64,000 nt of DNA, from the sequence record MG752970.1; one strand, 5' to 3'. Positions 13,286 to 56,485 of this stretch are shown here, one piece after another. The notes under the pieces are model-generated. The model worked only from the letters and a program-made list of their open reading frames with translations. It had not been told where the DNA came from and did not search any database. How positions within the stretch are numbered: the stretch's first letter is position 1; each line of letters opens with the position of its first letter. The position numbers and the translations under genes were made by a program.

Positions 13286-14521
13286 ATGAATCTATTTGAA
13301 AATTGGGGTGACGCTAAGGGCGCTCTATTGGAAGGTCTAGCACCATCCAAGAAGAAGCTAGTTGACACTCTACTAGAAAACACGAAGTCACGCATGATTG
13401 CTGAAACGGCTGCTTCTGATGTTACATCACAAGGATCAGTTTCACAATTCAACCGTATTCTTCTTCCAATGATCCGCCGTGTTATCCCTGGCACTATTGC
13501 TACGGAACTCGTCGGTGTACAGCCAATGCATGGCCCAGTTGACCTAGTCTTCTCCATGCGCTATACCTACGGTCAAGATCTTCTAACCGGTGCGTCACTA
13601 ACTGACATCACCCATGGTAACGAAATCTTCGCTCCAGGTACTTCAACTTCTTCAAAGACCAAGCGCTTCTACACTGGTGGTATGACTGCCGGTACTGACG
13701 GTGTATTCTTCACTGCAGACGACGTTGCAACTGGTTTCGCTGCTGATACTGGTCTATTCGAATCATTCGGTGGACGTACAGCTAAGCTAGAAGTCTTGAA
13801 GCAAACTGTTACCGCTGGTACACGTAAGCTACAAGCTAAGATGACCCTAGAAGCTATGCAGGATCTATCATCCCAGCATGGTCTAGATCTAGAGTCCGAG
13901 CTAACTCGTATTCTTTCAACCACGATCGTTACCGAAATCGATAACGAAATTATCACTGACCTTCAGGTTCTAGCTGGTACTTCCGAATCATTCGATATGA
14001 ACGGTACTTTCACTGGTACTCCACACTACGTTGGTGATCGCCACGCTGTTCTAGGTGTTCTAATCAACAAGGTTGCTAACGAAATCGGTCGTAAGATCCG
14101 TCGTGGTAACGGTAACTTCGTTGTGGTTTCACCACTAGTTGCATCAGTTCTACAATCAGCAAGCAAGTCAGTATTCGCTCCAGCTGTTTCAGGAACTTTC
14201 GAAGGTCCAAACAACACCAAGATGATTGGTACCCTAAACGGCACCATCAAGGTTTACTCATACATCTACTTCGACCAAGGCACTGAGCCAGTCATCGTAG
14301 GTTATAAGGGTGGCGATGGTGAAACTGATACTGGTTACTTCTACTGCCCATACATTCCATTGGAATCAAGCGGTATCGTAACTGATCCAGTTACCTTCAA
14401 CAAGCACGTTTCACTGATGACTCGTTATGGTAAGGCTACATTCACCAACACGAGCACGTCGCTTGGTAACTCAGCTGACTATTATGGTAAGGTGACGGTT
14501 GCTAACCTAGCATTCGTTTAA
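13286..14521 (+). CDS. gp23: Major capsid protein
   Basis: LLENT, LPMIRRV, VGVQPMHGP, RKLQAKMTLEAMQDL...HGLD, EIDNEI, FYCPYIPL, MTRYG. Confidence 0.97.
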   Translation: MNLFENWGDAKGALLEGLAPSKKKLVDTLLENTKSRMIAETAASDVTSQGSVSQFNRILLPMIRRVIPGTIATELVGVQPMHGPVDLVFSMRYTYGQDLLTGASLTDITHGNEIFAPGTSTSSKTKRFYTGGMTAGTDGVFFTADDVATGFAADTGLFESFGGRTAKLEVLKQTVTAGTRKLQAKMTLEAMQDLSSQHGLDLESELTRILSTTIVTEIDNEIITDLQVLAGTSESFDMNGTFTGTPHYVGDRHAVLGVLINKVANEIGRKIRRGNGNFVVVSPLVASVLQSASKSVFAPAVSGTFEGPNNTKMIGTLNGTIKVYSYIYFDQGTEPVIVGYKGGDGETDTGYFYCPYIPLESSGIVTDPVTFNKHVSLMTRYGKATFTNTSTSLGNSADYYGKVTVANLAFV

Positions 14522-15828: not shown

Positions 15829-16308
15829 ATGGCTGACAATGTTGCAAATCAAGCAGTAGGTGTCGTTGATAAAGCGGTCACGAAGGCGCTTGATCCGTTG
15901 AGCGAAGCTTTGACACACATCATTGATGCTACAGTGAAGGCTGGAACTGCGGGCATCAATTTCTTGTCTGAGCAGATTCCAGATGTTATTCACCAACTTC
16001 TGGTGTGGAAGGCGATTCAATCTTTCCTTCCATTCATGCTCGGCATCGTGGCGATGATCGCCGGTTCCTACGCCATGTACTACATCATCAAGATGTATCG
16101 CAAGAACGTAGCAGCATACGAGCAGCGTCGACCGCACGGTCTTGGGTATGACGCCTTCGTTGAATGGATCTTGGGACTTTGCGCCGCAGGTGTGGTTGTC
16201 ATGGGATTCTTTGGTGCGGCTACACATATGACGTGGCTGCAGATCATCGTAGCACCGAAGATTTACCTGATTGAATACGCAGCACATCTTTACACCTCAA
16301 TGAAATAA
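15829..16308 (+). CDS. Membrane protein, FLSEQIPDV family paralogue 1
   Basis: Two hydrophobic segments; shared FLSEQIPDV and APKIYL motifs. Confidence 0.8.
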   Translation: MADNVANQAVGVVDKAVTKALDPLSEALTHIIDATVKAGTAGINFLSEQIPDVIHQLLVWKAIQSFLPFMLGIVAMIAGSYAMYYIIKMYRKNVAAYEQRRPHGLGYDAFVEWILGLCAAGVVVMGFFGAATHMTWLQIIVAPKIYLIEYAAHLYTSMK

Positions 16309-16320
16309 CTGGGTGATTGA

Positions 16321-16602
16321 ATGAATGAATTTGAAGAAGACGCAAATAAGTACACCGGCATCCTGAAAGCTCTGTCGGAGGCACCTGGCTCGCAGATTGA
16401 CTCGGCTATTACCATGAAGTTGGCGACTCTGGCCAATACTGTTGATGTGAAGGCGAGTCAGATGCATGATATTCTGGATGAGTGCGCGCATGCAAGTCTG
16501 GCATCTGACTTTGCAATGATGGCGATGGACACCATCTGGAATCAGATGTTGGCCGATGAAGGTGACACGAAGGAAGAAGCTATTCGGAGGAAGCATGGCT
16601 GA
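16321..16602 (+). CDS. Hypothetical protein
   Basis: 93 aa ORF in operon, GGGTG RBS. Confidence 0.7.
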   Translation: MNEFEEDANKYTGILKALSEAPGSQIDSAITMKLATLANTVDVKASQMHDILDECAHASLASDFAMMAMDTIWNQMLADEGDTKEEAIRRKHG

Positions 16603-17020
16603 TGCAGGCAATGTAACACAGGATGTGATGAACAAGGTTGCTACAACCTTGCCTGAAGCTCTGGCGAAGATCATCGATAAGTCGATCAACGCTATCGATG
16701 CCGGTGTCAACTTTCTGTCTGAGCAGATTCCGGACGTTATTCATCAGTTGTTGCTCTATAACCTGGTGTGGAGCTTGATGTGGTGGATCGTTGGACTAAT
16801 TGGGATGATCATTAGTATCGTCACGGTCTTTTATGTTTGCAAAAGCGAAAAATGGACCGGGGATGAAACTGGCGCTGCATGTATGGCAATGTTCTTCCTT
16901 TTTATGGTAAGCATGGTTACTTTTGCGTCTCATTGGGAGTGGTTGCAGATTTGGTTGGCTCCGAAGATTTACCTAATCGAGTACGCAACGCATCTTTACA
17001 AGTCGATGTCTTCAAAGTAA
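16595..17020 (+). CDS. Membrane protein, FLSEQIPDV family paralogue 2
   Basis: GGAGG RBS supports start 16595; same motifs. Confidence 0.8.
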   Translation: MADAGNVTQDVMNKVATTLPEALAKIIDKSINAIDAGVNFLSEQIPDVIHQLLLYNLVWSLMWWIVGLIGMIISIVTVFYVCKSEKWTGDETGAACMAMFFLFMVSMVTFASHWEWLQIWLAPKIYLIEYATHLYKSMSSK

Positions 17021-17032
17021 TAAGGGGAATAT

Positions 17033-17563
17033 ATGTCTGCGGCAACGTGGAATAACGCCAGTGACGCAAGTGCAGTGGCGACGAATGTTGTTGATAAGAT
17101 CGCGGATCCTGCGTCCAGGCTTCTGCTGACTCTCATCGAGAAAACGGGAAGTGCGATTGAGACAGGTGTCAACTTCCTGTCTGAGCAGATTCCAGATGTT
17201 CTTCGCCAGCTGCTCATGTATAACCTAATTGTTAGCGTCGCCTGGTTCACAGTGGGTGTGGCTATAGTTTGCTTTGGTCTGTGGATTATTAAATCTTCGT
17301 TCAAAGCTACGGATAAAATGCATGCTGAATATGCGAAAGCTCTGTCCGAATGGGAGGAGAAATCTAGGGATAAATTTGCTGGTAGGATGCCGGAACGTGA
17401 AGAGGAATTTCTTCTACCTATGTGCGTCTTCGCTGCTATTATTATCGTAGTTGGCATGTCCGTTATGGCTTTCCACATGGATTGGTTGAAAATCTGGATA
17501 GCACCCAAGATTTATTTGCTGGAATACGCAGCCGATTTGTATAAGAATTTTAGGGGACGATGA
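17033..17563 (+). CDS. Membrane protein, FLSEQIPDV family paralogue 3
   Basis: AAGGGG RBS; same motifs. Confidence 0.8.
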   Translation: MSAATWNNASDASAVATNVVDKIADPASRLLLTLIEKTGSAIETGVNFLSEQIPDVLRQLLMYNLIVSVAWFTVGVAIVCFGLWIIKSSFKATDKMHAEYAKALSEWEEKSRDKFAGRMPEREEEFLLPMCVFAAIIIVVGMSVMAFHMDWLKIWIAPKIYLLEYAADLYKNFRGR

Positions 17564-51432: not shown

Positions 51433-51739
51433 ATTGATCATCTCACTGTTGTCCATTTTCATGATTTCCGGATGTGCTACCACGTCTGACGTTAAGGTGG
51501 TGGAAAAGATTAAATATGTACGTGATGATATTCCAGCTGAAATGCTGACTATCCCACCGCATCAGGCTAATTTAAATGTTGATGATCCAGCTCTAACTCA
51601 GAAGGACGTTGGTATGTGGATTATAAATGAAGCTGATTATTCGACAACTGTTACAAAGATGCTTGAGGCAATTAAGAGCTATCAAGATAAGCGTGATGCT
51701 GACATTGAGAAAATGAATAAAGATCAACAAGGAAAGTAA
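51422..51739 (+). CDS. o-spanin (Rz1-like lipoprotein)
   Basis: MRAKLIISLLSIFMISG-C lipobox; Pro-containing mature part. Confidence 0.8.
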   Translation: MRAKLIISLLSIFMISGCATTSDVKVVEKIKYVRDDIPAEMLTIPPHQANLNVDDPALTQKDVGMWIINEADYSTTVTKMLEAIKSYQDKRDADIEKMNKDQQGK

Positions 51740-53409
51740 TGGGTTGCGTAGCATCAAAGAAAGCCGCAAAGGATGTCTCTGCAAGATGGGCATCCTTTGC
51801 TGTCTCTGACGACGTATATGACAAGGATACGTTTCAGCAGCAAAATGAATGTTCGGAGGGATATTTGGCCCGCGCCGGAGTTCCAGTAGATGAAAGAAAT
51901 GGTGGTGACTTAGCATCCAACCAAATAGAAAATGTTTCTATTCCGGTAAAATGCGATCTATCTGTTGATACCCAGATGAAAATCACCAAGCTTGATTCTC
52001 CATTTACTGGACCAGTAACATGGTCGGCGTTTTTTCCTGATGGAACTACACCATACAGTGGTGATGTGAATGTGGATTCTTCGGGTCGTGTTTCGGGTAC
52101 TTACACCAGGGAATCAACGTACGAGATGCAGATTGTGGCTAAGGATTCAACTGGTCAAGTGATTGATAAAAAGCAATTCAAATTGGTAGCCCAGAAATGC
52201 AAACCTGGTTTGTCAATTAAATTTCAACACCCACTCCCAGGATCAGTATGTACGTCCAAATGTAATCCTAACCGAGTTCACCCTGTTACCGGGCAGGTAA
52301 AACCGCATAAAGGCTGTGATTTTGCGTATCCAGGTGGAGCCACAAAAGATGCTCTTGCATCCGCCGACGGAGAAGTTATTTTTGCCGGCGTGAAGAATGG
52401 CTATGGAAACGTGGTTTACATTGGTCATAAGAATGGTGCTGGAGTTGCATTGTGTGTTACTAAATACGCCCACCTAGAAAAAATATATGTCAAAGTGGGT
52501 GATAGAGTTTACGGCGGTCAGCCTGTTGGTCACGAAGGAAAAACAGGGATTGGCACGGGAAAACACTTGCACTTTGAGATTAGAGGAGGAGACGGACAAG
52601 ATGCAGTTGTGTATGATCCGTTGGAATACATTGATGGAACTCTGACTATTAAAACTGACCCAGCTGCTCAGGCAGCTAATGGTGATGCTGATACTGGAAA
52701 CGCTGATGGCAATGCAACACAGAAGCAAAACAACAACGTTCAATTGACAACGGCAAAAGCTCAATTGCCATGTTCGGGATTTCAGAATAACCAAAATGAT
52801 GGAGCAACTCCTCCAACACAACCAACAGTCAATCCAGGTCTTGGATGTGATTTTGAATCCGCATTTAGATTCACAATGCGTTATGAATGTACTCCTTCAT
52901 TCGACGTGAACGACCCTGATGTTATCGCGGGCAACATTAGCACGCCGGCCGCCGCTCGTAAGTGTGGTTACGTGAACAACCCGTCTGATAAAGGGGGAGT
53001 CACAAAATACGGCGTGGCGCAAAATAGTAACCCACACTATAACGTAGCTTCTCTTAATTTGGATTCTGCTAGAGGAATATTTAAACAGAAATATTGGGAT
53101 GTTGGTGGAGCTGCTCAGCTTCCGTACCCTCTTTGTGTGGTGCATTTCGATACGTGTGTTCTGTTCGGTCCTGCCCGAGCCGTAAAATTTGTCCAACAGG
53201 TTCTTGGTGTTCCTGATACCGGACGAATGGATGCAGCTACAGCTTCAGCTGCAGCAGCCTATGCTGACCAGAATGATTTGAAGAATAAGGTAATACAGAA
53301 GAGAAGAGATTACCATATCAACAGATGCAATGAAAATCCATCTCAGAAAAAATTCCTGAATGGTTGGTTGTCACGTTGCAACAGTCTTCAAAGCTCTTTT
53401 AACGGATAA
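51739..53409 (+). CDS. Multi-domain muralytic protein: Ig-like + M23 peptidase + GH108 muramidase/PG-binding
   Basis: HKGCDF, GYGNVV, YAHL, HLHFE (M23); DKGGVTKYGV and FLNGWLSR (GH108). Confidence 0.88.
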   Translation: MGCVASKKAAKDVSARWASFAVSDDVYDKDTFQQQNECSEGYLARAGVPVDERNGGDLASNQIENVSIPVKCDLSVDTQMKITKLDSPFTGPVTWSAFFPDGTTPYSGDVNVDSSGRVSGTYTRESTYEMQIVAKDSTGQVIDKKQFKLVAQKCKPGLSIKFQHPLPGSVCTSKCNPNRVHPVTGQVKPHKGCDFAYPGGATKDALASADGEVIFAGVKNGYGNVVYIGHKNGAGVALCVTKYAHLEKIYVKVGDRVYGGQPVGHEGKTGIGTGKHLHFEIRGGDGQDAVVYDPLEYIDGTLTIKTDPAAQAANGDADTGNADGNATQKQNNNVQLTTAKAQLPCSGFQNNQNDGATPPTQPTVNPGLGCDFESAFRFTMRYECTPSFDVNDPDVIAGNISTPAAARKCGYVNNPSDKGGVTKYGVAQNSNPHYNVASLNLDSARGIFKQKYWDVGGAAQLPYPLCVVHFDTCVLFGPARAVKFVQQVLGVPDTGRMDAATASAAAAYADQNDLKNKVIQKRRDYHINRCNENPSQKKFLNGWLSRCNSLQSSFNG

Positions 53410-53411
53410 TC

Positions 53412-53699
53412 ATGGCAAAAATAGGAAGATTGGGGGATCCATTTGATGATGGTGACTTTATCGCTCAGGGGAGTGCAAATGTGTTTGTTAACGGACTTCC
53501 CGCGTCAAAAGTCGGAGATATGACTACAGGTCATGAAGATTGGCCACCAGTTGCTATTATTGATGGGGCATCTACGGTTTTTGTAAATGGTGTCCCATTA
53601 GTAAGAGTTGGATCGCATCATGACATACACTGCAATCATGACGACGATTGTCACGATGCAACACTTATTGATGGATCAGATACGGTTAACGTAGAATAA
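53412..53699 (+). CDS. PAAR-domain spike tip protein
   Basis: GRLGD...GSANVFVNGLPASKVGD...H, repeated thrice. Confidence 0.9.
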   Translation: MAKIGRLGDPFDDGDFIAQGSANVFVNGLPASKVGDMTTGHEDWPPVAIIDGASTVFVNGVPLVRVGSHHDIHCNHDDDCHDATLIDGSDTVNVE

Positions 53700-54592
53700 T
53701 GCCAAGAAATCAACAGAAAAATTACACATACGTACCCAACTTTAGATTGAATTCTACTCAACAGATGCCATCGTTTGAGAGTTTTCGTTCTCGCCTAGAA
53801 ATTGGTGGAACTTTTTTCAGATCTAAAGCTATAGGAACAGAAGCAAACAAAATATCTGTCACGTGTACGGTTTCTGGAACCACTTTCACTCTGTTGGTCC
53901 AATCGACTATTTCGGTAAAAAACGTAACATACACCGGTACGGCTACAAAATATGGGGTTAACGTTGTAGCACCGGATACTTCGGTTCCGCAGGATGTTAC
54001 GTTATCTTTCTCTTCTGCCACATCTTTCTCTATGACTGGATCCGTAAGTGGGACAACTGGTCCATTTCAGGTTGGATCTGCAGCTAGAATTGCGGGATGC
54101 ATAGTAACTGTTATTCCTGGATCTTCTCCATTTTCTTCGGGTGACAAGATAAAATTTTCGGTTGTTAAACCTAGGGAAACTTATTCAGCAGACCAATCGG
54201 GAGCTATAGATCCCATTACAGGAGCATTTGTTGGGACTTCTGCTATTCCTGCTATCAGGGCCGCAGTAAATGCTCAAAGTTCTCTGATTGAAATGCCTGA
54301 ACGTGGATACGACTATGTCGATCTGGTAGGAACCGATTCTGGATCTGGCAGAACAGTAGGACGCTCTGGTCCTCTTCTGACCCCAGAAGGTGCTCTTTCC
54401 GTTTTTCCACAGACGCTTCTATATGGGGCTTCAGGCCCTCCATCAAACCCATCTGGTATACAAACCGGCCCCGAGCGAACATTAATCCATTTGAATAGAA
54501 CTGAGAATGACCAGGGAGCTCTGGTTTCTATCGGTAAGGTCCTGGAGTTCGTCGGGTCTTCAGTGTATAATGGCTTCTTCCAGGAGTACTGA
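53699..54592 (+). CDS. Hypothetical structural protein
   Basis: Coupled to PAAR gene. Confidence 0.7.
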   Translation: MPRNQQKNYTYVPNFRLNSTQQMPSFESFRSRLEIGGTFFRSKAIGTEANKISVTCTVSGTTFTLLVQSTISVKNVTYTGTATKYGVNVVAPDTSVPQDVTLSFSSATSFSMTGSVSGTTGPFQVGSAARIAGCIVTVIPGSSPFSSGDKIKFSVVKPRETYSADQSGAIDPITGAFVGTSAIPAIRAAVNAQSSLIEMPERGYDYVDLVGTDSGSGRTVGRSGPLLTPEGALSVFPQTLLYGASGPPSNPSGIQTGPERTLIHLNRTENDQGALVSIGKVLEFVGSSVYNGFFQEY

Positions 54593-54619
54593 AGGTCTCT
54601 GGGGACCTCTGAATCTCTA

Positions 54620-54660
54620 GGATTTTTCACGATATGAAATTTGGGATTTTTCACGATATG
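54620..54660. repeat. 17-bp direct repeat GGATTTTTCACGATATG x2
   Basis: 54620-54636 and 54644-54660, just upstream of a sigma70 promoter. Confidence 0.85.
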
Positions 54661-54672
54661 GTATAAAAACTA

Positions 54673-54701
54673 TGTACATATCGAAAAACCTGACATATAA
54701 T
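54673..54701 (+). promoter_or_regulatory. Sigma70-type early promoter
   Basis: TGTACA-17 nt-TATAAT, A-rich upstream. Confidence 0.7.
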
Positions 54702-54775
54702 ATCTCATACTTTGAATATTTCGAAACACCGAAGATTCAAGTAAAACTAATAAATCCAGAAACGGAGAAGTTAAA

Positions 54776-56161
54776 ATGGCAAAAGCAACCCTGACCTACA
54801 ACGCAGCTACCGATAAGTGGGAAGCAAAGTACAACGGTGTTGTTATCATCAAGGGTGGTTCCCGTCAATATGTTGAAAACGCTGTGAACAGCGGTTTGAA
54901 CACGAAGTGCAAGAAGCTGGGTATCGACGGTTTCCTCTCTGATGAAGTTGCTCACGAAGATATCCGCGATTCCATCTCTGAAATGTTCGGTGTTACTGAA
55001 CGTTTTGAAATGCTGAATACGCTGGCTACGATGATCGCCAACGACAAGGCAAAATCGCTGATTGTTACTGGTACTGGTGGTCTCGGCAAAACGCACATGA
55101 TTCTCGAGGCCATGCGAGCTGCAGGTCTTCAATCTGCAGACGAAGCTCCGAAGTTTGATGCAACGGTTCTCTTCCCGAAGGAATGTGAAGAACTTCGGAA
55201 AGCCGTTCATGCAGCCATCGACAAGGCAAATGCATTCTATGCAGAACGCCGTGAAGAGCTGGAAGAAGAAAACGAAGATAATCCGGATTTCGAACATAAG
55301 CTTGCTGAAATCGATCTTGAGTATCCTAACATCGAGTTTAACAATCTCGATCATGGTAAGATTCTTGGTACAGCTCACTATGCTTCGAACACGATCTCCT
55401 TCAACTTCGCGGCATACTTGCACAACCCGAGCGCCTTCATCAATGTGGTAGCTCCCCACGAAGTTTCTCACTTGGTTGTGGATGCACTTTACGCTGACGC
55501 TGACAAGCATCCCAAGGCACACGGCAAGGAATTCCGGAAGGTGATGCAGGAATGCTTCGACCTGGACGGTTCGGCTACCACGCCCGTTGGTGATATGAGC
55601 TACGTGCATACGAATGAAACCTGGAAGAATCCTGGTGACTACACCATGATCAAGGGTTATTCGACTGCTAAGGGTCTCTATAAGGCTCTGTATGCCAATC
55701 GCAACAAGATCGTGATTCTCGATGACTGCGACTCGGTTTGGAAGGATGCGGTGTCGCTGAACATCATGAAGGCAGCTCTGGATTCCTACGACAAGCGGAT
55801 CGTCTCCTGGAATGCAGACATTGATGACATGCCTACCTCGTTCGAGTTCACCGGCCGAATGATCTTCATCTCCAACCTGAGCCAGAATGATCTGTCGCAG
55901 GCAGTTAAGTCCCGTAGCCTGCGTGTTGATCTCTCTATGACGACTCTGGAAAAGATCGAGCGCATGGAACACCTGGTTGAATCCGAAGAGTTCATGGCTG
56001 AGGTTCCGAAGAACATCAAGCGTGAAGCGATGGCCTTCATGAAGGAGCATGCAGCTCAAGCAACGGACCTGAACATCCGTACTCTCATGTCGGTGATCAC
56101 TCTCCGCATGGGTGCTCCTAAGTCGTGGACCCGCCTGGCTCTGTACACGATCACCGCGTAA
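54776..56161 (+). CDS. AAA-type ATPase with inserted SprT-like Zn metalloprotease
   Basis: Walker A GTGGLGKT, HEVSH and HGKEF (SprT), Walker B ILDDCD, IFISN, SRS. Confidence 0.85.
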   Translation: MAKATLTYNAATDKWEAKYNGVVIIKGGSRQYVENAVNSGLNTKCKKLGIDGFLSDEVAHEDIRDSISEMFGVTERFEMLNTLATMIANDKAKSLIVTGTGGLGKTHMILEAMRAAGLQSADEAPKFDATVLFPKECEELRKAVHAAIDKANAFYAERREELEEENEDNPDFEHKLAEIDLEYPNIEFNNLDHGKILGTAHYASNTISFNFAAYLHNPSAFINVVAPHEVSHLVVDALYADADKHPKAHGKEFRKVMQECFDLDGSATTPVGDMSYVHTNETWKNPGDYTMIKGYSTAKGLYKALYANRNKIVILDDCDSVWKDAVSLNIMKAALDSYDKRIVSWNADIDDMPTSFEFTGRMIFISNLSQNDLSQAVKSRSLRVDLSMTTLEKIERMEHLVESEEFMAEVPKNIKREAMAFMKEHAAQATDLNIRTLMSVITLRMGAPKSWTRLALYTITA

Positions 56162-56165
56162 GTAA

Positions 56166-56192
56166 AAGGAGAGTCCTAGGACTCTCCTTGTT
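56166..56192. terminator. Bidirectional terminator
   Basis: 24-bp perfect palindrome AAGGAGAGTCCTAGGACTCTCCTT between convergent genes. Confidence 0.85.
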
Positions 56193-56212
56193 GCAGATTT
56201 CTCCGTGTGAGA

Positions 56213-56485
56213 TTAGATAATTGCCATAATCTCACTTTCACGGGCTAGATAAACGTCTAGCCCGTTTATTTTTGTCTTCTTGGCGTCGGTGTGGTGAATC
56301 AGAATCGAGTCACCAACTTTGACGTCCATCGGAAATTCCTTTCCAGGTCCTGTCTGGATTACGTGTCCAGTTAGGATTTCTTCTCCTTGTTGCTGCATGA
56401 CAACAATTCCTGCTACTTCTCGTTGAGAAGTGTCTGCAACCGTAAATGCTACATAGTCATCTAACAGGGTGATAGTTTCGGTCAT
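56213..56485 (-). CDS. GroES-like co-chaperonin
   Basis: LLDDYV, mobile loop AGIVV, GHVIQTGPG, VKVGDSIL, ESEIMAII. Confidence 0.88.
   Translation of the reverse strand: MTETITLLDDYVAFTVADTSQREVAGIVVMQQQGEEILTGHVIQTGPGKEFPMDVKVGDSILIHHTDAKKTKINGLDVYLARESEIMAII

Follow-up and report, generated by a model that had tools for sequence, protein, structure and literature searches.

A predicted SprT-type metalloprotease domain nested within a NrdC.10-family AAA+ ATPase of the Ralstonia jumbo phage RsoM2USA

Results

Gene 429 combines an AAA+ ATPase of the NrdC.10 family with a nested SprT-like domain

The 64,000-nucleotide stretch of DNA analysed here (hereafter, the window) belongs to the 343.8-kb genome of RsoM2USA (MG752970.1), a giant soil phage of Ralstonia, a plant pathogen. 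The plus-strand open reading frame (ORF) at positions 54776–56161 of the window is RsoM2USA gene 429, the 461-amino acid product of which, gp429, is annotated in the record as a 'hypothetical protein' (RsoM2USA_429). A previous inspection of the letters alone (the sequence-only reading) had placed a SprT domain after the Walker A motif but before the Walker B motif of an AAA ATPase. This architecture is borne out: the motifs lie where they had been located, and the match to the Pfam SprT-like family falls into the gap of a split match to the phage protein family phrog_1250. Six-frame and profile searches of the phage record showed that gp429 carries the only SprT-like domain and is the only phrog_1250 member of the phage genome.

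The AAA+ ATPase that forms the scaffold of gp429 belongs to the family of phage T4 NrdC.10 (phrog_1250; 327 profile positions, 'unknown function'). The profile matches with an E-value of 3.7e-48 in two pieces, covering profile positions 10–128, which end at about residue 116 of gp429, and 131–325, which correspond to residues 284–459; because the profile is contiguous across the split, the gap holds ~165 extra residues. BLASTP likewise aligned gp429 with T4 NrdC.10 (5e-17) in two segments, one on either side of the insert; nrdC.3, nrdC.4 and nrdC.5 of T4, also considered as the T4 homologue, were rejected as unrelated when tested. A sequence search of the PDB with gp429 gave no meaningful match. 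A word-indexed search of 5.8 billion proteins recovered 2,740 relatives, the best 119 of which, the query aside, are 295–352 residues long, lack a SprT domain and share 49%–60% identity with gp429 over the best local alignment, namely, the part following the insert.

Of the 33 columns that are invariant in the alignment of 119 family sequences, none is altered in gp429; they include G99, G101, G102, G104, K105, K293, G294, G300, D316, D317, D319, W345, S366, N367, R380, D385 and R435. The Walker A motif GTGGLGKT occupies residues 99–106 (nucleotides 55070–55093), whereas the Walker B motif IVILDDCD (IVILDD placed at residues 311–317, D316 at nucleotide 55721) contains DD and not DE. Judging by position, N367 is the putative sensor 1, R380, in an SRS motif just before strand beta5, the putative arginine finger and R435, where a lid helix begins, the putative sensor 2.

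A full-length AlphaFold2 model built on the family alignment has predicted local distance difference test (pLDDT) values above 90 for residues 1–120 and 285–461 and of 35–56 in the insert region, where the insert had no alignment depth in that run. When residues 71–461 of the model, trimmed of low-confidence stretches, were compared with known folds, the AAA+ modules of NorQ/MoxR, dynein AAA1, RFC subunits, RuvB and Hda were matched with Z-scores of 12–13 over ~200 residues, and a Foldseek search with the ATPase model retrieved the same proteins again, plus Lon. The alignment of the AAA+ module reaches residue 461, with the lid helices in residues 390–461. In our reading of the model, the beta-hairpin at residues 342–357, before beta4, takes the position of the pre-sensor-1 hairpin, and the invariant loop KGYSTAKG after beta2 that of pore loop 1 in translocating AAA+ proteins; the loop is conserved in the family, yet is not a canonical aromatic-hydrophobic-Gly pore loop 1. 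As modelled, the scaffold is a genuine AAA+ module with a lid and a small N-terminal alpha/beta domain (residues 1–55).

The insert retains the predicted catalytic site of SprT proteins

The domain in the insert is of the bacterial SprT type and nearly complete. Residues 185–261 match the SprT-like family PF10263 with an E-value of 1.1e-9 (38.5 bits vs a cut-off of 25.6), and the match recurs in the six-frame search. The NCBIfam SprT model PRK04860 also matches (E-value of 1.9e-14), over positions 32–114 of 170; its score of 53.6 bits stays far under the full-length cut-off of 175 bits, in line with a SprT domain devoid of the zinc ribbon. Consistently, the insert contains no cysteine cluster and no match to PF17283, and gp429 falls outside the full-length bacterial SprT proteins delimited by the PRK04860 equivalog. 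The motif HEVSH (residues 228–232) is followed 17 residues downstream by HGKEF (residues 249–253).

When the insert alone was searched exhaustively with HMMER against 1.84 billion cluster representatives, 116 matches were obtained (best E-value of 2.7e-10, ~40% identity over the aligned core), essentially all to stand-alone SprT proteins of ~110–250 residues, many with a C-terminal zinc ribbon. In an alignment of the insert with 112 SprT homologues (113 sequences), the only invariant columns are G198, H228, E229, H232, H249 and G250, all of which are kept in gp429. By analogy with the SprT family, H228, H232 and H249 are predicted to be zinc ligands and E229 the catalytic glutamate.

In a single combined alignment of ATPase and SprT homologues, whether full-length or trimmed, MAFFT either put the SprT HExxH motif beneath the Walker A region or scattered the SprT fragments; the attempt was abandoned, and the full-length protein and the insert were therefore modelled separately. 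The insert model (residues 122–290, built on the alignment of SprT homologues) has a pLDDT of 84.6 and a predicted template modelling score of 0.79, and shows a three-stranded sheet together with the HExxH and HG helices and, at the N-terminus, a long helix. Over insert residues 7–154, Foldseek matched it to the AlphaFold models of Vibrio, Pectobacterium and E. coli SprT (E-value of 7e-8, template modelling score of 0.61), a comparison with predictions on both sides. Against the PDB, minigluzincins were retrieved with probabilities of 0.97–0.99, and SPRTN (6mdx, E-value of 0.8), Wss1 (5xbn, E-value of 5.8) and IrrE more weakly. Independently, a structural search of the ESM Atlas returned a SprT cluster for residues 118–339. 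Viral AAA clusters of ~538 residues appeared in the same resource among the feature-based look-alikes of gp429, and might be NrdC.10-like ATPases with other insertions or extensions.

The insert occupies a variable loop and is confined to one phage lineage

The spacer between G117 and K293 measures 175 residues in gp429 vs a median of 28 (range 21–53) in the 118 closest homologues, in which the Walker A helix and strand beta2 are joined by a loop that is short, acidic and variable. By the topology of the fold, the insertion point, namely, the alpha1–beta2 connection, would lie at the edge of the sheet, at a distance from the ATP site. LonB and LonC likewise tolerate additional domains in the stretch that separates Walker A from Walker B (PMC7800598). 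Whether the ATPase fold survives the insert had been set beforehand as a test of the nested arrangement: the models give no sign of disruption, and both ATPase halves and the insert are under purifying selection (see below).

The sequence-only reading had further suggested checking relatives for insert-less alleles, and these turned out to be the rule. The insert-less form is encoded in ~1,300 phage genome records, mostly of T4-like phages of enterobacteria, Vibrio, Acinetobacter and Aeromonas. The nearest insert-less relatives of gene 429 adjoin genes for ribonucleotide reductase, dUTPase or dCMP deaminase, and gene 429 is not syntenic with them; T4 nrdC.10 is located in the nrdC region. Among these ~1,300 NrdC.10-encoding records, none besides RsoM2USA covers the insert. 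A region search of the word-indexed 5.8 billion proteins returned the query itself only, the exhaustive HMMER search of the 1.84 billion cluster representatives returned stand-alone SprT proteins only, and no other insert-bearing gene turned up when metagenome contigs of IMG/VR and JGI were scanned for patterns. Several longer HMMER matches (P0186, P0209, P0210 and P0183) were considered as insert-bearing ATPases and rejected, being without a P-loop, as were P0138, P0178 and P0223, which are low-complexity matches. In the databases searched, the insert-bearing form is limited to the RsoM2USA lineage. Pfam detected no intein or homing endonuclease in the insert, only the SprT-like domain, and the insert sits in a variable acidic loop and not in a conserved catalytic site, as inteins do.

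The insert-less NrdC.10 genes lie repeatedly inside nucleotide-metabolism clusters (nrdA, nrdD, nrdB, dUTPase and dCMP deaminase), as in L012:838–8399, the P0002 contig and T4 (L004:2344–3321), which may be a clue to the role of the family or reflect a shared early/middle expression class. In many records of T4-like phages, NrdC.10 homologues, which are AAA+-type ATPases, carry the label 'thioredoxin' (e.g. L002:2668–3645 of Klebsiella phage JD18_080), apparently propagated from the gene name nrdC.10.

Environmental alleles reveal purifying selection on both parts

Additional alleles surfaced only through a sequencing-run index and membership of the 90%-identity cluster of gp429. The second member of this cluster, P0237, comes from two ENA metagenome assemblies and is 94% identical to gp429 at the amino acid level without gaps; its neighbourhood is that of RsoM2USA, with an M23/GH108 protein, PAAR, a 297-residue protein, gp429 and a convergent Cpn10 gene. 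An 18.9-kb contig from a sequencing run (X1) spans positions 54503–56400 unbroken at 95% nucleotide identity, with one 1-nucleotide gap, inside the intergenic spacer. Contigs from another study cross the 5' junction and the insert, and parts of the gene are present in public soil and wastewater runs of several studies. Relatives of RsoM2USA that are 88%–95% identical at the nucleotide level and syntenic over at least 17 kb comprise L013 (an ENA contig of 50 kb), L014 and the Logan contig in run X1; because soil metagenomes from several independent studies, as well as one wastewater run, contain relatives, this lineage of phages is widespread beyond the Florida isolate.

Across three alleles there are no coding indels. 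The ENA allele is 88% identical to gene 429 at the nucleotide level, with 133 of the 163 differences at third codon positions, and H228, E229, H232, H249 and G250 are unchanged in P0237. The ratio of nonsynonymous to synonymous substitution rates (dN/dS), calculated by the Nei–Gojobori method for gene 429 and the ENA allele, is 0.061 for the whole gene, 0.026 and 0.035 for the parts N-terminal and C-terminal to the insert, respectively, and 0.116 for the whole insert, within which it amounts to 0.055 for the SprT core (residues 176–262), 0.137 for the helix and linker and 0.41 for the 21-residue tail; neighbouring genes have values of 0.004–0.10. Thus, the ATPase halves and the insert are under purifying selection, and the SprT core is conserved about as strongly as the ATPase.

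Genomic context and expression unit

Gene 429 follows a plus-strand baseplate/PAAR module, from which it is separated by an AT-rich spacer of 183 nucleotides, and converges on a minus-strand module, the first gene of which encodes Cpn10 (Table 1). Several neighbours annotated as 'hypothetical' can be named. Domain matches on near-identical homologues identify gp430, 56213–56485(-), as Cpn10/GroES (PF00166) and gp425, 51739–53409(+), as a Peptidase_M23 plus Glyco_hydro_108 protein, that is, a tail-associated lysin, whereas gp426, 53412–53699(+), is the PAAR spike tip, with a faint Pfam match on a near-identical homologue and this name in the phage paper. The annotated antisense coding sequence (CDS) RsoM2USA_428, 54737–56050(-), of 437 residues is the exact reverse-complement frame of gene 429. 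This frame is open only because gene 429 contains no TTA, CTA or TCA codons, A-ending codons being nearly absent, and between alleles its translation is 71.5% identical vs 94% for the sense frame. RsoM2USA_428 was rejected as a real overlapping gene on both grounds; it is very likely a shadow ORF, the CDS of which should be dropped from the annotation.

Table 1. Features of the gene 429 locus (nucleotide positions in the window)
Feature	Position	Strand	Details or basis
Upstream regulatory spacer	54593..54775	+	Repeats, -35/-10-like pair, GGAG ribosome-binding site ~8 nt before ATG
Whole gene RsoM2USA_429, AAA+ ATPase with nested SprT	54776..56161	+	ORF; alleles without coding indels; dN/dS 0.061
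N-terminal small alpha/beta domain, residues 1–55, common to insert-less relatives	54776..54940	+	pLDDT 92–96
Modelled elements of the N-terminal domain			Strands 2–9, 14–19, 22–27, 50–54; helices 30–39, 43–48 (model)
AAA+ core part 1, residues 70–117: N-terminal helix, beta1, Walker A, alpha1	54983..55126	+	pLDDT 94–98
SprT-type zincin insert, residues ~121–283	55136..55624	+	Split phrog_1250 match, spacer statistics, insert model
Make-up of the insert			N-terminal helix ~136–165, acidic linker, three-stranded sheet, HExxH helix, HG helix; no zinc ribbon
Predicted catalytic zinc site: H228-E229-x-x-H232 (55457–55471), H249-G250 (55520–55525)	55457..55525	+	Invariant SprT columns
AAA+ core resumes: beta2 (YTMIK), KGYSTAKG loop, alpha2, beta3 and Walker B (D316/D317, 55721–55726)	55640..55732	+	
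Rest of AAA+ large subdomain	55733..55942	+	Hairpin 342–357, N367 (55874–55876), SRS R380 (55913–55915); DSSP on model
AAA+ lid, residues 390–461, putative sensor-2 R435 (56078–56080)	55943..56158	+	Four helices, pLDDT 93–98
3' hairpin cluster	56162..56275	+	Palindromic hairpin 56162–56194, second hairpin, terminator overlapping the Cpn10 3' end

The sequence-only reading had described gene 429 as a stand-alone unit with a sigma-70 promoter, a terminator and a preference for C- and G-ending codons. The gene does have its own conserved upstream region and a terminator. The upstream spacer is identical to that of the environmental allele L013 at 178 of 183 positions, which, given a synonymous divergence (dS) of 0.59 between gene 429 and the L013 allele, argues for a functional promoter, operator or leader. 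It contains two exact 17-nucleotide direct repeats, GGATTTTTCACGATATG, at 54620–54636 and 54644–54660, 24 nucleotides apart; exact copies of their 13-nucleotide core occur only here in the 344-kb genome, with one single-mismatch copy elsewhere. An imperfect inverted copy (ACATATCGAAAA) overlaps the -35-like hexamer. The promoter itself is less certain: the pair TGTACA-17-TATAAT at 54673–54701 agrees with the sigma-70 consensus at 10 of 12 positions, but such matches are no rarer than expected by chance (3 found vs 2.7 expected). With its conservation and repeats, the spacer resembles an operator or promoter for a regulator. The 3' side folds into three hairpins (fold energy of -55.3 kcal/mol, z = -6.8 vs shuffles), of which the first, a perfect palindrome, is conserved in L013. 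Another of the three is a canonical plus-strand terminator (stem at 56240–56265 and a T-run, up to 56275), which is situated within the final codons of the convergent gene for Cpn10.

As for codon usage, the G+C content at third codon positions (GC3) of gene 429, 0.58, is indeed the highest among the long ORFs of the window, most neighbours having 0.27–0.40, and its effective number of codons (ENC) is 42.5 vs a median of 49. The bias, however, is an avoidance of A-ending codons, which apart from GCA are nearly absent, with GGT, GTT, CTG and ATC favoured and many choices ending in T (GGT, GTT and GCT). Such a bias would be expected if the gene was acquired recently, or else if it is selected for being translated efficiently with the tRNAs of the host, and by itself is no indicator of early expression. 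Elsewhere in the window, three ORFs just downstream of the capsid genes, 15829–17563(+), have a GC3 of 0.49–0.57, unusually high for a genome of 41%–43% GC, and the major capsid gene, 13286–14521, combines the strongest codon bias (ENC of 32.5) with a GC3 of only 0.40. There seem to be two different regimes of codon bias in this phage.

Discussion

The building blocks of gp429, an AAA+ ATPase and a SprT zincin, belong to known families; what is new is their nested architecture, and we found no precedent for a protease domain nested in the nucleotide-binding core of an AAA+ protein. With the T4 NrdC.10 family, including metagenomic relatives of 49%–60% identity, gp429 has in common the homologous N-terminal domain, the AAA+ core, the lid and all invariant residues, but those relatives, 295–352 residues long, have an acidic loop of 21–53 residues where gp429 has 175 residues with the SprT domain. 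The gene has also been relocated: it stands between the baseplate module and Cpn10, whereas its NrdC.10 relatives stand beside nucleotide-metabolism genes. Similarly, the insert shares the N-terminal helix, the three-stranded sheet, the HExxH/HG helices and all invariant residues with bacterial SprT (PRK04860, or PF10263 plus PF17283, of ~165–170 residues), but is distinguished by the absence of the C-terminal ribbon, by an extra acidic linker after the first helix and by being nested rather than free-standing.

Among systems that pair an ATPase with a protease, the sequence-only reading had singled out eukaryotic SPRTN and Wss1, which, like gp429, tie a SprT-type HExxH...H protease to an AAA+ ATPase, p97/Cdc48. 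In the eukaryotic case, p97 unfolds crosslinked proteins for SPRTN (PMC9127365). This parallel proved to be only loose, considering that the scaffold is no Cdc48-type unfoldase but belongs to the T4 NrdC.10 family, has a DD Walker B and finds its best folds in NorQ/MoxR, dynein AAA1, RFC, RuvB and Hda. SPRTN or Wss1 and p97 are two separate proteins, joined by SHP/VIM motifs and ubiquitin/SUMO signals, with p97 a classic-clade double-ring unfoldase; by contrast, gp429 is one chain with a single AAA+ module of another family and no ubiquitin system, and its structural match to 6mdx and 5xbn is weak. FtsH and Lon resemble gp429 in uniting an AAA+ module and a protease in one polypeptide, Lon being among the fold matches and FtsH a HExxH zincin too. 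In these enzymes, however, the protease comes after the AAA+ module and builds a ring of its own, whereas in gp429 it is itself nested in the AAA+ core and belongs to the SprT family rather than to M41 or S16; gp429 has neither a C-terminal protease nor a canonical pore loop 1. The plasmid R388 protein ArdC is, like gp429, a mobile-element protein with a targeting domain and a minimal zincin that is fold-related to SPRTN and IrrE (PMC7213743), but its single-stranded DNA-binding domain and Spartan-like metalloprotease are arranged in tandem rather than nested, the third ligand is Glu and there is no ATPase.

We favour the view, with a probability of roughly 0.55, that gp429 is a functional chimeric enzyme in which a SprT-type zinc metalloprotease inserted in a NrdC.10-family AAA+ ATPase is coupled to ATP, the ATPase taking the place of the ribbon. 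The architecture, the intact motifs, the predicted intact folds and the purifying selection in both parts, and the conserved separate expression unit are established; protease activity, ATPase activity, their coupling, oligomerization and the target are what we infer. In such a scenario, a SprT domain would have entered the alpha1–beta2 loop of a NrdC.10-type ATPase in an ancestor of RsoM2USA-like phages and, upon insertion, lost its C-terminal zinc ribbon, the usual nucleic acid-binding module. The ATPase would now fulfil the former roles of the ribbon by providing for recruitment to the target and by acting as an on/off switch. Binding of ATP may drive the assembly of an oligomer, a step in which R380, as putative arginine finger, would act in trans. 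The target would be engaged via the N-terminal domain and the invariant beta2–alpha2 loop, bringing the SprT active sites beside the engaged protein, which would then be cleaved.

Several points weigh against this view. The paper on RsoM2USA assigned no function to gp429. The placement of the insert relative to the ATPase in the full-length model, at a pLDDT of 35–56, is unreliable, the best matches to SPRTN and Wss1 in the PDB are weak (E-values of 0.8 and 5.8), and the insert helix and linker (dN/dS of 0.14) and the tail (0.41) evolve faster than the SprT core. The NrdC.10 family is not placeable in an unfoldase clade, and a DD Walker B, as opposed to DE, is found in switch-type AAA+ proteins such as DnaA. 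Finally, we know of no firmly established substrate of bacterial SprT.

As to the target, our preference, albeit a weak one, by analogy with SprT/SPRTN and considering the DNA-handling nearest folds (RFC, RuvB and Hda), is a protein bound or crosslinked to nucleic acid; such a nucleoprotein target is made plausible by the nucleotide-metabolism neighbours of the relatives, the DNA-handling folds and the action of SprT/SPRTN on DNA-bound proteins. In its fullest form, unlikely in our estimate, this proposal would make gp429 a protease that is gated by ATP and clears nucleoproteins without a partner, the viral equivalent, in a single chain, of eukaryotic p97–SPRTN. It might assemble on DNA and strip off proteins attached covalently or tightly to replicating phage DNA or to the host nucleoid.

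The main competing explanation, likewise unlikely in our estimate, is that the protease serves host takeover or anti-defence and has nothing to do with DNA lesions. The ATPase would recognize one specific protein of the host, for instance a transcription factor, a nucleoid protein or an immunity complex of the restriction or another type, and the SprT domain would inactivate it by cleavage. The moron-like separate unit with its own conserved promoter region and atypical codons, placed between the baseplate and convergent modules, is consistent with such a role, as are the absence of synteny with the nearest insert-less relatives, which sit in nucleotide-metabolism clusters, and the confinement of the insert-bearing form to one lineage. 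The sporadic SprT-like peptidases of jumbo phages have likewise been proposed to hit host proteins (PMC7824862), and the Spartan-like metalloprotease domain of plasmid ArdC is needed to overcome a type I restriction system (PMC7213743). Nevertheless, the third metal ligand differs in ArdC, a gluzincin outside the SprT family, and a PADLOC search of gp429 produced only weak P-loop matches and no significant defence or anti-defence family.

We regard as improbable that the insert is a non-proteolytic regulator of the NrdC.10-type ATPase, whether DNA-binding, protein-binding or autoinhibitory, or that it cuts gp429 only. The loss of the zinc ribbon, the usual partner domain of SprT, would agree with this, and the nearest folds in the PDB are minigluzincin zymogens and selecase, which regulate themselves by oligomerization; SPRTN, moreover, is known to cleave itself (PMC7826251). 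However, neither of two diverged alleles has lost any metal ligand, the catalytic Glu or the conserved Gly, and the dN/dS of the SprT core, 0.055, is as low as that of the ATPase, whereas pseudo-enzymes usually lose such residues. Least credible by far is an assembly chimera, an ATPase gene inactivated by a SprT gene or an intein-like selfish insert, for although the insert-bearing form is found in one phage lineage only and the ATPase relatives are without it, the same uninterrupted 461-codon gene is present in independent metagenome assemblies, one 18.9-kb contig spanning all of it, every invariant residue is kept on both sides at a dN/dS of 0.06, Pfam detects no intein or homing-endonuclease domain and the site is a variable acidic loop, the dN/dS values and intact alleles excluding artefact, gene decay and intein-like junk for practical purposes.

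For the favoured reading of gp429 as an ATP-coupled SprT protease, the protein is compact, conserved, easy to express and amenable to clear catalytic and Walker mutants, so that the questions raised here are directly testable. Since RsoM2USA is a candidate for the biocontrol of bacterial wilt, knowledge of its host-directed enzymes has practical value. The fusion further suggests that an ATPase can functionally replace the zinc ribbon of SprT, which bears on how SprT/SPRTN proteases are restrained. Moreover, it represents a 'Rosetta stone' that ties the NrdC.10 family, comprising a T4 gene and present in >1,300 phage genome records, to regulated proteolysis; if the nucleoprotein-clearing proposal is true, the widespread NrdC.10 ATPases of T4 and ~1,300 phage genome records would act on DNA-bound proteins.

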